Part shown: positions 50,974 through 59,944 of the stretch, piece by piece
Position numbering within the stretch: position 1 is the first letter of the stretch
Layout: the number at the start of each line of letters is the position of its first letter
Assembly: GCA_964035545.1 (NCBI GenBank)
Contig: OZ037772.1
Span: 12,212,818-12,276,817, forward strand
Direction: 5' to 3'
Origin: Bugula neritina
Lineage: Eukaryota; Animalia; Bryozoa
Length of the DNA: 64,000 nt
Notes under the pieces: model-generated
What the model was told of the DNA's origin: nothing
Seen by the model: only the letters and a program-made list of their open reading frames with translations
Database searches by the model: none
Program-made: the position numbers and the translations under genes

Positions 50974-51561
50974 CTATGTAGCTTTAGGAGGTTTGTTCAG
51001 GTCTCTCCTAGACTCCACCAACATAGAGTACGCCCTCTTCCCTCTCTGCAGTCTCATGTGTGAGTCAGCAGCCACCGACTCCCACGGCTTGTGTTTGGTA
51101 GCCCTCCGGCCGGTGCTCGTGTCGAGCCCTGTACAGCACAGGTTCCGGCAGCTCGAGACGTGAGACTCCTTCTTGACGCTGCTGCCTCCTTTCAGCACCT
51201 TGTAGTACGACAGCATATACACCTGATAATCAGCGTAGCTCCAGCACTCAATGCTGCCGTGATTATCTTCTGCGTATTGGACACACAGCTTGACGCTTTC
51301 CTTTGCAAACTCTGCCAAGTTTTTGTCGTATCTAAAGTCATTTCCTCGGATTTTCAGTGGCACCCATTTCATGCGCAGACTTGGAGTGATTTGTTTACTC
51401 TGAGCATTACATTTTCCAGCCCCGAGTTTCCGGCGGGCAAACGAGTTCACTTCGAGGGGAAGTGCCAGCTCGCCAGGATGATGTAATATTAACGAGACTA
51501 TGTTGAGGCGGAGATTGTGCTTGATGAACACAGGAAGTGGTAGTGGAATGTGTTCTTCATT
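50974..51561 (-). CDS. 195-aa terminal exon of unknown domain type, spliced in phase 0 to the Vav-B SH3 exon
   Basis: Non-repetitive ORF in AT-rich surroundings; acceptor ttgtttcag|AAT at 51561 matches the phase-0 donor ACG|gtatta at 52051. Confidence 0.7.
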   Translation of the reverse strand, partial: NEEHIPLPLPVFIKHNLRLNIVSLILHHPGELALPLEVNSFARRKLGAGKCNAQSKQITPSLRMKWVPLKIRGNDFRYDKNLAEFAKESVKLCVQYAEDNHGSIECWSYADYQVYMLSYYKVLKGGSSVKKESHVSSCRNLCCTGLDTSTGRRATKHKPWESVAADSHMRLQRGKRAYSMLVESRRDLNKPPKAT

Positions 51562-54500
51562 CTGAAACAAGATTCCATGAAAACTTATCAATTTTTATTT
51601 TCTTGGTATAATAAAATGAAAATATTTGATACTTTTATATCATATTTTCAAAGGGTTAAAGGTTAAAGCATTACACTATCAGATGCAGATGATCTAAACA
51701 TGGCCTTGACCTTTTATATTTCAGTGTAACCACATTTTTTTAACAATAAACCTAAGTATTATTTTATTAAATTACATAACTCAGCAAGTGCTATATAATT
51801 CTCAGATAAAATGGCACAAATGTGTCTACCGACATGAGTTGGCAGGTGCCCTATAAAATAAGCAACTCAATTATGACCTAAAATGTTCTATAAACAGAAA
51901 AGTACTTATGAATGGCATGACTAGGCAACTGCTCTATATATAAAAATATGTCATCTTGCAGGTGACATGGCTAGACGAGTGCTCTATATATAGAAATATA
52001 TCATTTTGCAGGTGACATGGCTAGACAAGTGCTCTATATATAATTAATACCGTGTGAGGGGTTTTGCTGTTGGACAAGCATTTAACACAGGCAGCTGGAA
52101 AATAGCCTTCTTTCTCTCCAACACGGCCAGCCCACCAGTCTGGGTCTTTAGCCTTAGTCACTTCTACAATCTCATCTAATACAGTACAGGCACAACAATG
52201 TCATCCAGCATAGAATACGCTTTTCATGCTCTCATTCATGCTACATCGGTTAAGTTATAACTATTTGCCCTTTTTGTGTAAAAAGAAACATTCAAGCCAA
52301 ATGTTGCTAACAGCCAGGCTAGTTGATGAAAGCTTGTTATGCAATCTTTCAAGAGCTTGTTGCTAGCTGCTGAACATGAGCAGGAATTGAGAGAAAAAAT
52401 ACAAGATCTGCACAGGGCAGTAAGGTTAAGAGTGCTTATAGTGCAGATGGTTTTAACGGTAACATAGACACCCCTGCCCATTGCTTATGCAAATAGTAAA
52501 AGGTTGGTAAGTTCCAAAGCAATAAATAACACTGAAACCAATTAACATAATTACAAAGATACAGCGCTAAAGATTTACAATTTAGGCTATTTCTTTTATC
52601 TACAAGCAATGTAGGTTTTATAAGACTGGGCATTACCTGGAGCTATGGGGAGAGTAGGTAGATCTCTACCAGGGGGAGGGAATCCCTTGTAAGGAGCAAT
52701 TGCAACTCCTTGCAAGCCTGCTGTATTTGTTTCTCCTGTTGTGGCTGCTGCCTCATCGTCTGAATAAATACATTACTCAAGTAAAACTATGTTATTGCAA
52801 TCAATTTATTTCAATTAAAACAAACTTTCATTAATTGATTCATAAATTTTAGTTTAATTTAAATTGGTGAAACCAGGCAACTCCTGCAATTCATGCAGTT
52901 TAGCATTTAGTTTATATGTAAACAGGCCTTACATCTGAGATGCTCAGCTTGTGACAGTGCGCAATGCTGCCAATAGTTTATTAAGATTGTTAATTCACAA
53001 TAGAATTTTGATCACAACATGTTAAGACCAGAACGCAACCAGCATTAGAGTCAGAGCTAGGTGCAGCAATAAAGAAATCGAGAAACGCATTTATATACTA
53101 GATGAGAGATATATCTGGAGAAGTTACTTTCTCTTGAAAGTTTTAACCCAACTCTATGACAAATTTCCAATGAAATTAAAACCCAGAAATAATGAAGTTT
53201 CTTTATTACTGCACCTAGAAGTTCAGTTGTTTTGAGCTATAGTTAGATTCTTAACTTAAAATGTGTGTTTAACAAATCTTTCTATACCAGTCAAACTTAG
53301 TTAATACAGCTTCGTATATGATAAGCTGTACTCATAGTAGTGCCTTTTCCAGAAGATAGTTTGATTTCACACAACCACAGCACAATCAAATCTGCAGGTA
53401 AGTGTGCCTACCCGCAATAAAGATAATACTAAAAGTAAAAATTCACTACCTTGTTTGTCTATCAGACTTCTCATGCAGCGTTTGTGTACTTTAGCCCCTG
53501 TATCTAAAAATAATCACAATATTAAACTGTTCTATTTCTAATATTTATAAATTTACTTGCACGTAAAATATGATACTTTTAAAATTGCCCATCTGCCACT
53601 TTCTGAACCTTTACTGTTTAAGACCAGCTATCTCTAACCATTCTAGTATTTTCTACATTTATATCAACTATTATAATATATGTGAATGCTATACCATCTA
53701 TGTTGACTACCATGTAATATGTTGACCCTACCATGATAATCTGATTTTCAAAATTGCCATTTTAGTGTCCTACAGAATTTAATATCATACAAAATCATTT
53801 TACAACTGACTAACCATGCAGTTAGTTCCGGTAGCTAGAGTAACTACTCAGTAGGCGCAAGATAACTTTAGACCAATGATACGATACATAAGATTCGGTC
53901 AACAAATCATGATTACTGTCTCAATATACTCACTTAAGCAGATGTAGCCTTGGTAGAAGCAGCCTGCTAGTAGTTTCTCACACACGTCACACTCAGTAGG
54001 CTGAGGAAATGTGTACATAATAAAATTATGACCTTTTTCTTTAGAGAACTCGGGGATGTAGTTATCTCTTCAAACAAAGAGAGGAGAGAAATTAGGCTAA
54101 GTCTTAGGACTACCTGTCTAATAAATTAGTAATAACTGGAATGAATAAAAAAAGTAGGAGAGAGAGAGAGAGAGAGAGAGAGAGAGAGAGAGAGAGAGAG
54201 AGAGAGAGAGAGAGAGAGAGAGAGAGAGAGAGAGAGAGAGAGAGAGAGAGAGAGAGAGAGAGAGAGAGAGAGAGAGAGAGAGAGAGAGAGAGAGAGAGAG
54301 AGAGAGAGAGAGAGAGAGAGAGAGAGGGAGAGGTAACCTACACAGCTGTGTTGATTGAGTGAACCCAATTCTGAGTCAGTTCTTTCTTTTTAGTTATAAA
54401 CTCCACCTCATTGCCGTTCTCTTTATTCACAAGTCTAAATGAGTCAGTAGACTGAAACATATTGTGAACAATAGATATAACAAGATAAACAATATACAGA

Positions 54501-59915: not shown

Positions 59916-59944
59916 TGTGTGTTTACACCATCATATCTCCCTAG

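Follow-up and report, generated by a model that had tools for sequence, protein, structure and literature searches.

The window analysed in this study is a whole stretch of 64,000 nucleotides (nt) from the bryozoan Bugula neritina (contig OZ037772.1; G000:C8:12212818-12276817), and it belongs to an assembly of 216.0 Mb in 321 contigs. A chromosome-level assembly of B. neritina with 216.00 Mb in 9 pseudomolecules has been reported (PMC11480708). The window carries two genes related to the Vav family of Rho guanine nucleotide exchange factors (GEFs), which lie on the same strand of the same chromosome, 35 kb apart. One of them, called Vav-A, is a complete Vav gene. The other one, which is named Vav-B here, is a 15-exon gene that contains the DH, PH, and C1 domains and the N-terminal SH3 domain (N-SH3), while the modules that stand at both ends of a canonical Vav were not found. 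Vav-B is known so far from a single species complex, represented by two B. neritina assemblies; the second of them is the 2020 draft assembly GCA_010799875.2.

Gene Structure of Vav-B

The preliminary description of this DNA, which was made from its letters, placed intact DH, PH, C1, and SH3 exons with conserved sizes and without stops in this region, together with the DH motifs ETERNY, LQDLLMLPMQR, and VNEVKRD. The peptides that it quoted were located by three-frame translation of 50.9-64 kb, and the motifs were found on the minus strand in the exons DH1, DH3, and DH4, in agreement with that description. With the exon borders read from the sequence and the pieces joined by a script, Vav-B spans 59940-50974 and has an open coding sequence (CDS) of 2046 nt, which encodes 681 amino acids (aa) without any frame break. 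All acceptors are AG and all donors are GT, and the lengths and phases of the exons match those of Vav-A (Table 1). The order of the encoded parts is a 13-aa start, the pre-DH exon, DH, PH, C1, a proline-rich stretch with the N-SH3, and a 194-aa tail.

The RhoGEF, C1_1, and SH3 domains were found by Pfam on individual Vav-B exons. The PH domain of Vav-A scored 72.6 bits with SOS1_NGEF_PH; single PH exons of Vav-B matched weakly (E 0.04). As the C1_1 score is above the cut-off and the PH exons are colinear with the PH domain of Vav-A, the DH-PH-C1 cassette is present in Vav-B. The catalytic motifs ETE.NY, PMQR..KY, and VNEVKRD are kept in its DH domain, with VNEVKRD aligned with Vav1, and Vav1 crystal structures are the best solved relatives of the public gene model from the Vav-B locus (E ~6e-15). 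An array of 24-nt repeats bearing AATAAA was seen between Vav-B and the convergent MEGF8-like gene, within the likely 3' untranslated region.

Table 1. Coordinates of the features in and next to the window (positions are those of the window).
Feature	Position	Strand	Remarks
Vav-B exon 1 (candidate first exon)	59877..59940, coding 59915-59877	-	ATG 59915-59913, MGAALITVAKVSP, donor GTAAGT
Vav-B exon 2, pre-DH helix exon ETREKKTTTDYCVLELL	59482..59533	-	Starts in phase 0, ends in phase 1; homologous to Vav-A 9703-9649
Vav-B DH1 (ETERNYVEAL...; conserved region 1, CR1)	58917..59032	-	Motif ETERNY
Vav-B DH2	58284..58487	-	Pfam RhoGEF E 1.3e-5; 41% identity with the Vav-A exon; best PDB relatives Vav1
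Vav-B DH3 (GGKFKLQDLLMLPMQRITKYGLILK; conserved region 3, CR3)	57663..57758	-	Motif LQDLLMLPMQR
Vav-B DH4	56930..57112	-	Motif VNEVKRD; inside the tract near-identical to Vav-A
Vav-B PH1-4	56292-56201, 55525-55480, 54794-54711, 54451-54342	-	Colinear alignment with Vav-A PH
Vav-B C1a/b, zinc-finger exons	54067-53934, 53503-53450	-	Pfam C1_1 29.6 bits (cut-off 26.5)
Vav-B SH3a/b, proline-rich/N-SH3	52759-52637, 52175-52051	-	Pfam SH3_2 29.8 bits, SH3_1 23.0 bits
Vav-B last exon, 194-aa tail and TAG stop	50974..51561	-	Phase-0 splice after SH3b
Candidate poly(A) signals: 24-nt tandem repeat with AATAAA in each unit	50572..50794	-	Sequence pattern only; AATAAA from 185 nt past the stop
Vav-A, complete Vav	1..15780, SH2 and C-terminal SH3 exons extending past the window start	-	CH exons from ATG 15780; DH-PH-C1-SH3
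MEGF8/attractin-like gene	~24.7-49.4 kb	+	3' end lies downstream of the Vav-B stop
Stomatin-like gene	Last coding exon found ~10 kb upstream of exon 1, ~6 kb past the window end	-	Band_7 E 2.7e-4

Relation between Vav-A and Vav-B

The two proteins show 53% identity over 474 aligned columns. Thirteen consecutive exons are matched in phase, and nine of the 13 are also equal in length, namely DH1-4, PH1-2, and C1a/b (116/204/96/183/92/46/134/54 nt), together with SH3a (123 nt). Between the paralogues, the non-synonymous divergence (dN) is 0.36 and the synonymous divergence (dS) is saturated, so the duplication is far older than the split of the two assemblies.

The DH4 exon and about 40 nt of its downstream intron are 96% identical between the two genes (7515-7738 vs. 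56890-57112; ~220 nt), and the introns flanking this tract cannot be aligned. When the draft assembly was added to give a four-way comparison, the tract showed three within-lineage sites common to both paralogues and only two paralogue-specific sites; outside the tract, every shared difference was paralogue-specific. The within-lineage sharing indicates that gene conversion in DH4 went on after the lineages had split. Taken together, the intron positions and phases, the sequence, and the conversion tract indicate that Vav-B belongs to the Vav family by descent.

Between C1 and SH2, Vav-A has an N-SH3, seen as an SH3 domain with a proline-rich stretch (690-1037 and the start of the window; L012:9141-9813). 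A review of the Vav family, by contrast, placed the origin of the N-SH3 at the tunicates (PMC4601183).

Absence of Canonical Vav Modules

Four features that define the Vav architecture are missing in Vav-B: the CH domain, the acidic tyrosine region, the SH2 domain, and the C-terminal SH3 domain (C-SH3). In genome-wide Pfam scans, PF00307 (CH) matched Vav-A at 15628-15774 and nothing near Vav-B, and PF00017 (SH2) picked up the Vav-A domain at the start of the window, with no match at Vav-B. When the CH, acidic, SH2, and C-SH3 exon peptides of Vav-A were searched by relaxed tblastn from 16.2 kb of the window to 30 kb beyond its end, and in the second assembly, only noise was obtained, with matches of E 0.06 or worse that were scattered over both strands. 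The search was also run with all open segments of Vav-A, and the pre-DH exon on exon 2 of Vav-B was the one specific match. As for the C-SH3, the Vav-A peptide gave a weak match to the N-SH3 exon (E 5.9), the rest being noise; the Vav-B open reading frame (ORF) ends at 50974, and the convergent gene comes next.

The preliminary description had reported no CH-like exon in the remaining 4 kb of the window, and this now extends over the full 10 kb that separate Vav-B from the next gene and to 30 kb past the window end. A tblastn search with the Vav-A CH domain upstream of the window, which it had proposed, returned noise only. Its central claim, that the autoinhibitory and phosphotyrosine-binding modules are absent from a gene beside a normal Vav, is therefore upheld within the limits set by the neighbouring genes.

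Conservation in a Second Assembly

The orthologous Vav-B locus in GCA_010799875.2 (L014) has a non-coding identity of ~80-85% to the window, with many indels. This assembly bears the same species name, and the paper on it reports high heterozygosity (PMC7576161). The non-coding divergence of 15-20% at the Vav-B locus indicates that the two assemblies are not recent copies of each other. L014 has the same 15 exons, AG/GT borders, start ATG, upstream TGA, and stop codon as the window, and the 28 canonical splice sites are kept in both assemblies. Changes in length were found in the SH3a exon only (L014:16747-16902; window 52637-52759; +42 and -9 nt) and are in frame. The 42-nt insertion is a GCA repeat that gives a run of 16 alanines, compared to three in the window.

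Selection was assessed between the two assemblies by Nei-Gojobori counts with binomial P values. The whole Vav-B CDS holds 69.5 synonymous and 26.5 non-synonymous differences (dS 0.177, dN 0.017), which gives a dN/dS of 0.095 (P 1e-25). The most constrained part is the DH domain with 0.045, followed by the tail with 0.072 (27 synonymous and eight non-synonymous differences; P 6e-12), PH with 0.14, C1 with 0.18, and SH3, the least constrained part, with 0.34. The value for Vav-A between the same two assemblies is 0.079. Vav-B is as constrained as the canonical Vav-A, which argues that it is not a pseudogene. The dN/dS check had been proposed in the preliminary description, and its result counters the possibility raised there that the locus is silent and evolving neutrally.

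With the DH2 exon as query, 1.84 billion representative proteins yielded one close match, P0001 (EB796_007073), from the draft assembly. It is a de novo model in which eight exons were skipped (in DH3, PH1, PH2, PH4, C1, and SH3), and it is thus not transcript evidence. Another matching protein, P0006, begins in intron sequence and is therefore a genomic ORF from a metagenome contig. Run X1 consists of short-read DNA unitigs of two haplotypes without splice joints. In DH1, it shows four heterozygous sites, all of which are synonymous third positions, and its alternative haplotype retains the TGA of exon 1.

Compared to the window, the draft Vav-A shows two 1-nt gaps in DH3 (within PMQRIMKY) and a further one in SH3b (L016:4555-4648, L016:11751-11862), and it has been annotated as three separate gene models; Vav-B in the draft has no such gaps. 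As the draft was made by Canu from PacBio reads with one round of Pilon, the gaps in Vav-A are probably assembly errors.

The 5' End of Vav-B

The preliminary description had taken the exon at 59877-59940 as the exon upstream of DH and compared it to the acidic exon of Vav-A. The first bases, the phases, the in-frame TGA, and the context of the ATG were all confirmed, but this exon does not lie directly upstream of DH, since exon 2 (59533-59482) stands between them. Exon 1 shares three features with the Vav-A acidic exon (10155-10050; peptide DEDIYGPISREDDEGDKIYEDLC): an AG precedes it, its first bases are GGAGAT, and it starts in phase 1 and ends in phase 0. In the ancestral frame it reads G-E-I-stop (TGA 59933-59931), and all three frames are stopped upstream of the ATG at 59915. 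Whatever is spliced into the exon-1 acceptor will therefore terminate. The sole frame of exon 1 that reaches exon 2 opens at this ATG (context ACAATGG) and gives MGAALITVAKVSP before the GTAAGT donor. The ATG, the TGA, the frame, and the donor are conserved in L014.

The acidic exons of Vav-A carry DDIY, DEDIY, and KIYEDL. The peptide MGAALITVAKVSP has no tyrosine and no acidic run, and it thus lacks an acidic region with regulatory tyrosines of the IYEDL type. The overall nucleotide similarity between exon 1 and the Vav-A acidic exon was not significant (268 of 1000 shuffles scored as well), so their homology rests on position, phase, and six bases. It is possible that exon 1 is a remnant of a Vav acidic exon.

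Exon 2 (ETREKKTTTDYCVLELL) is homologous to the pre-DH exon of Vav-A (MSQSHKKTLSQFCIEELI), whose peptide had no other match. An in-frame TGA is located 15 nt upstream of the exon-2 acceptor, which excludes an extension by intron retention. After the ATG at 59915, the next Met in this frame is found within the first DH helix. The exon-1 acceptor adjoins a 17-nt minisatellite (59944-60500; unit ~CTGCACACCTCTACTGG, minus strand), which was found in both assemblies; its three frames are open and contain no ATG.

Spliced-leader trans-splicing at the exon-1 acceptor was considered and dropped for a bryozoan; we know of no evidence for it in bryozoans. N-myristoylation of the Met-Gly start was also considered. 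The PROSITE-type pattern is not matched, as there is an Ile instead of Ser/Thr/Ala/Gly/Cys/Asn, and no claim is made.

The C-Terminal Tail

The tail begins at a phase-0 junction after SH3b (...CVKCLSNSKTPHT) and continues for 194 codons. It is basic, with an isoelectric point (pI) of 9.65, and the last 74 residues have a pI of 10.3. Between the two assemblies, it is 96% identical and has the same length and stop, without any indel. The tail is real coding sequence, in which neither a fold nor a motif could be recognised.

No homologue of the tail was found in Pfam (E<=10), in PDB, or elsewhere in the genome, and among 5.8 billion proteins, only the same locus was matched. In the ESM atlas, the best score was 0.76, with unnamed clusters and recognition below the usual level. 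A degenerate SH2 domain was suspected from an SH2-like spacing seen by eye and was rejected; there was no Pfam or PDB match, and the alignment with the Vav-A SH2 was no better than shuffles (P 0.13).

Neighbouring Genes

The MEGF8-like and stomatin-like neighbours leave little room for further Vav-B exons. Upstream of Vav-B, two stomatin-like genes with Band_7 stand head-to-head (L009:6175-9265, ~6-9 kb, and ~14.7-21 kb past the window end), and a Yip1-like gene on the plus strand lies beyond them. A repeated ORF fragment (...SIKYNFRC.NFKIA...) was observed ~1.4-1.6 kb past the window end on the minus strand, upstream of Vav-B, and also downstream of Vav-A (L012:1147-1266). It is probably a dispersed fragment of a mobile element.

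Discussion

Vav is a textbook Rho-GEF gated by tyrosine phosphorylation, and the removal of its N-terminal clamp is oncogenic in mammalian cells. The core of DH, PH, and zinc finger (ZF) alone is phosphorylation-independent in cell assays. Vav proteins are defined by the DH-PH-ZF core plus the SH2 domain, which links them to tyrosine kinases (PMC4601183). It has been documented that the CH-acidic region and the C-SH3 keep the catalytic core clamped, that tyrosine phosphorylation frees it, and that truncations of the clamp parts lead to hyperactive proteins (PMC4601183). Invertebrates were said to have a single Vav with a conserved scaffold (PMC4601183); unlike this, Bugula has two genes of Vav descent, Vav-A and Vav-B.

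In comparison with the Vav family, i.e., vertebrate Vav1/2/3, the invertebrate Vav, and Vav-A, Vav-B shares the exon structure, the DH-PH-C1 cassette, and the proline-rich/N-SH3 parts. However, it lacks the CH domain, the acidic tyrosines, SH2, and C-SH3, and it has a new N-terminus of 13 aa and an orphan tail of 194 aa instead. The inhibitory parts that are gone in Vav-B are the same as those removed in onco-Vav (residues 1-66 absent), in deletions of the CH and acidic regions, and in deletions of the C-SH3. Those truncations are laboratory or tumour artefacts of one gene, whereas Vav-B is a germline gene under purifying selection with an intact Vav alongside, lacks SH2 as well, and carries a new tail. 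A natural Vav product with a partial domain set is also known in Vav3.1, an N-terminally truncated transcript variant of VAV3 in which nothing but the SH3-SH2-SH3 adaptor part at the C-terminus is left. Vav-B resembles it in having a partial set, but Vav3.1 is a transcript variant with the adaptor part, while Vav-B is a separate gene with the catalytic part.

The copy spans the acidic exon to the N-SH3 exon with the introns retained, which fits a partial duplication at the DNA level. We suggest that an old duplication may have covered only this internal part of Vav with its introns in place, and that a start codon would afterwards have arisen within the acidic exon of the copy as this exon decayed, together with a new terminal exon. 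Vav-B would not be held off by the canonical clamp of CH-acidic and C-SH3, and phosphotyrosine would have no SH2 domain through which to recruit or release it. As both the clamp and SH2 are absent, its activity would have to be set by expression, localisation, the partners of the proline-rich/SH3 unit, or the tail. Considering the gene structure and the GEF reading together, we regard it as likely that Vav-B is a selectively maintained, predicted Rho/Rac-family exchange factor of Vav descent. That it would be constitutively active and kinase-independent is a reasonable inference. A germline "onco-Vav" in a stricter sense, i.e., a phosphotyrosine-independent Rac/Rho GEF in which the clamp and the SH2 coupling were replaced by a lineage-specific autoinhibitory or membrane-targeting tail born de novo at the duplication breakpoint, appears rather doubtful to us. 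To call the tail a new targeting module would be a guess.

Several observations weigh against the preferred reading of Vav-B as a maintained exchange factor. The matching database proteins P0001 and P0006 were predicted from DNA, and run X1 is also DNA. Exon 1, the candidate coding start, is short and holds only one coding substitution between the assemblies, and the flanking intron is equally conserved. In the C1 domains of both Vav-A (2558-3014) and Vav-B (53450-54067), two of the eight zinc ligands are absent, namely the second Cys of CxxC and the last Cys. The loss of these ligands is older than the duplication. AlphaFold2 (AF2) on a two-sequence alignment of the tail gave no fold, with a predicted local distance difference test (pLDDT) of 33 and a predicted template modelling score (pTM) of 0.26. 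The functional reading is extrapolated from vertebrate truncation mutants, and the tail or the partners could regulate the protein otherwise.

The gene may be real and yet start elsewhere, with one or more upstream exons that are not CH-like being spliced into exon 2 at phase 0 and perhaps restoring autoinhibition or targeting. The exon-1 start is predicted from DNA, many blocks in the ~9.8 kb of intergenic DNA upstream are more than 92% conserved between the assemblies, and two small ORFs there have low apparent dN/dS values (63146-63051, 0.09; 60746-60576, 0.17). These ORFs, however, are AT-rich and of low complexity, rest on 8-14 differences, with ~60 tests made, and resemble nothing, and no convincing ORF that is open in both assemblies with a coding substitution pattern was found in the 9.8-kb interval. 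Since exon 1 itself offers a good-context ATG, the correct phase, and a consensus donor, all conserved in the second assembly, since a stop is met in every frame behind its acceptor, and since similarity to CH or acidic regions was found nowhere nearby, we consider a start elsewhere unlikely. Somewhat less probable still is that Vav-B was kept without being a deregulated exchange factor, serving non-catalytically as a scaffold or competing with Vav-A for GTPases or SH3 ligands. Adaptor functions independent of catalysis are known for Vav proteins (PMC4601183), and the incomplete zinc ligands of both Bugula C1 domains, the SH3 region as the least constrained part, and the strong constraint on the orphan tail would agree with such a role. 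On the other hand, constraint in Vav-B is strongest in the DH domain, CR1, CR3, and VNEVKRD are common with Vav1, and gene conversion keeps one DH exon nearly the same in both paralogues.

Were Vav-B a pseudogene, a partial duplicate in decay or without transcription, this would explain a copy without both ends of the parent gene and the poor model in the public annotation of the draft. This explanation seems very improbable to us, because the ORF of 681 codons is intact and its splice sites are conserved between assemblies that are well diverged in non-coding DNA, the indels are in frame only, the dN/dS of the whole gene is equal to that of the parent gene, and the polymorphism in DH1 is synonymous only. 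We therefore return to Vav-B as a maintained gene. What is new, as judged from the sequence, is a second Vav copy in an invertebrate that appears truncated at both ends and selected, a Vav by descent and not by architecture.

Vav-B is approximately what laboratories build in order to obtain a hyperactive Vav, yet it is as constrained as its parent gene. Provided that its expression follows the model, it would be a natural experiment on how an unclamped DH-PH-C1 core is used or tamed. It would also present a clean case of a partial duplicate that gained its start codon in a decayed exon, and its strongly selected C-terminal domain without relatives would be a candidate for the de novo birth of a domain.

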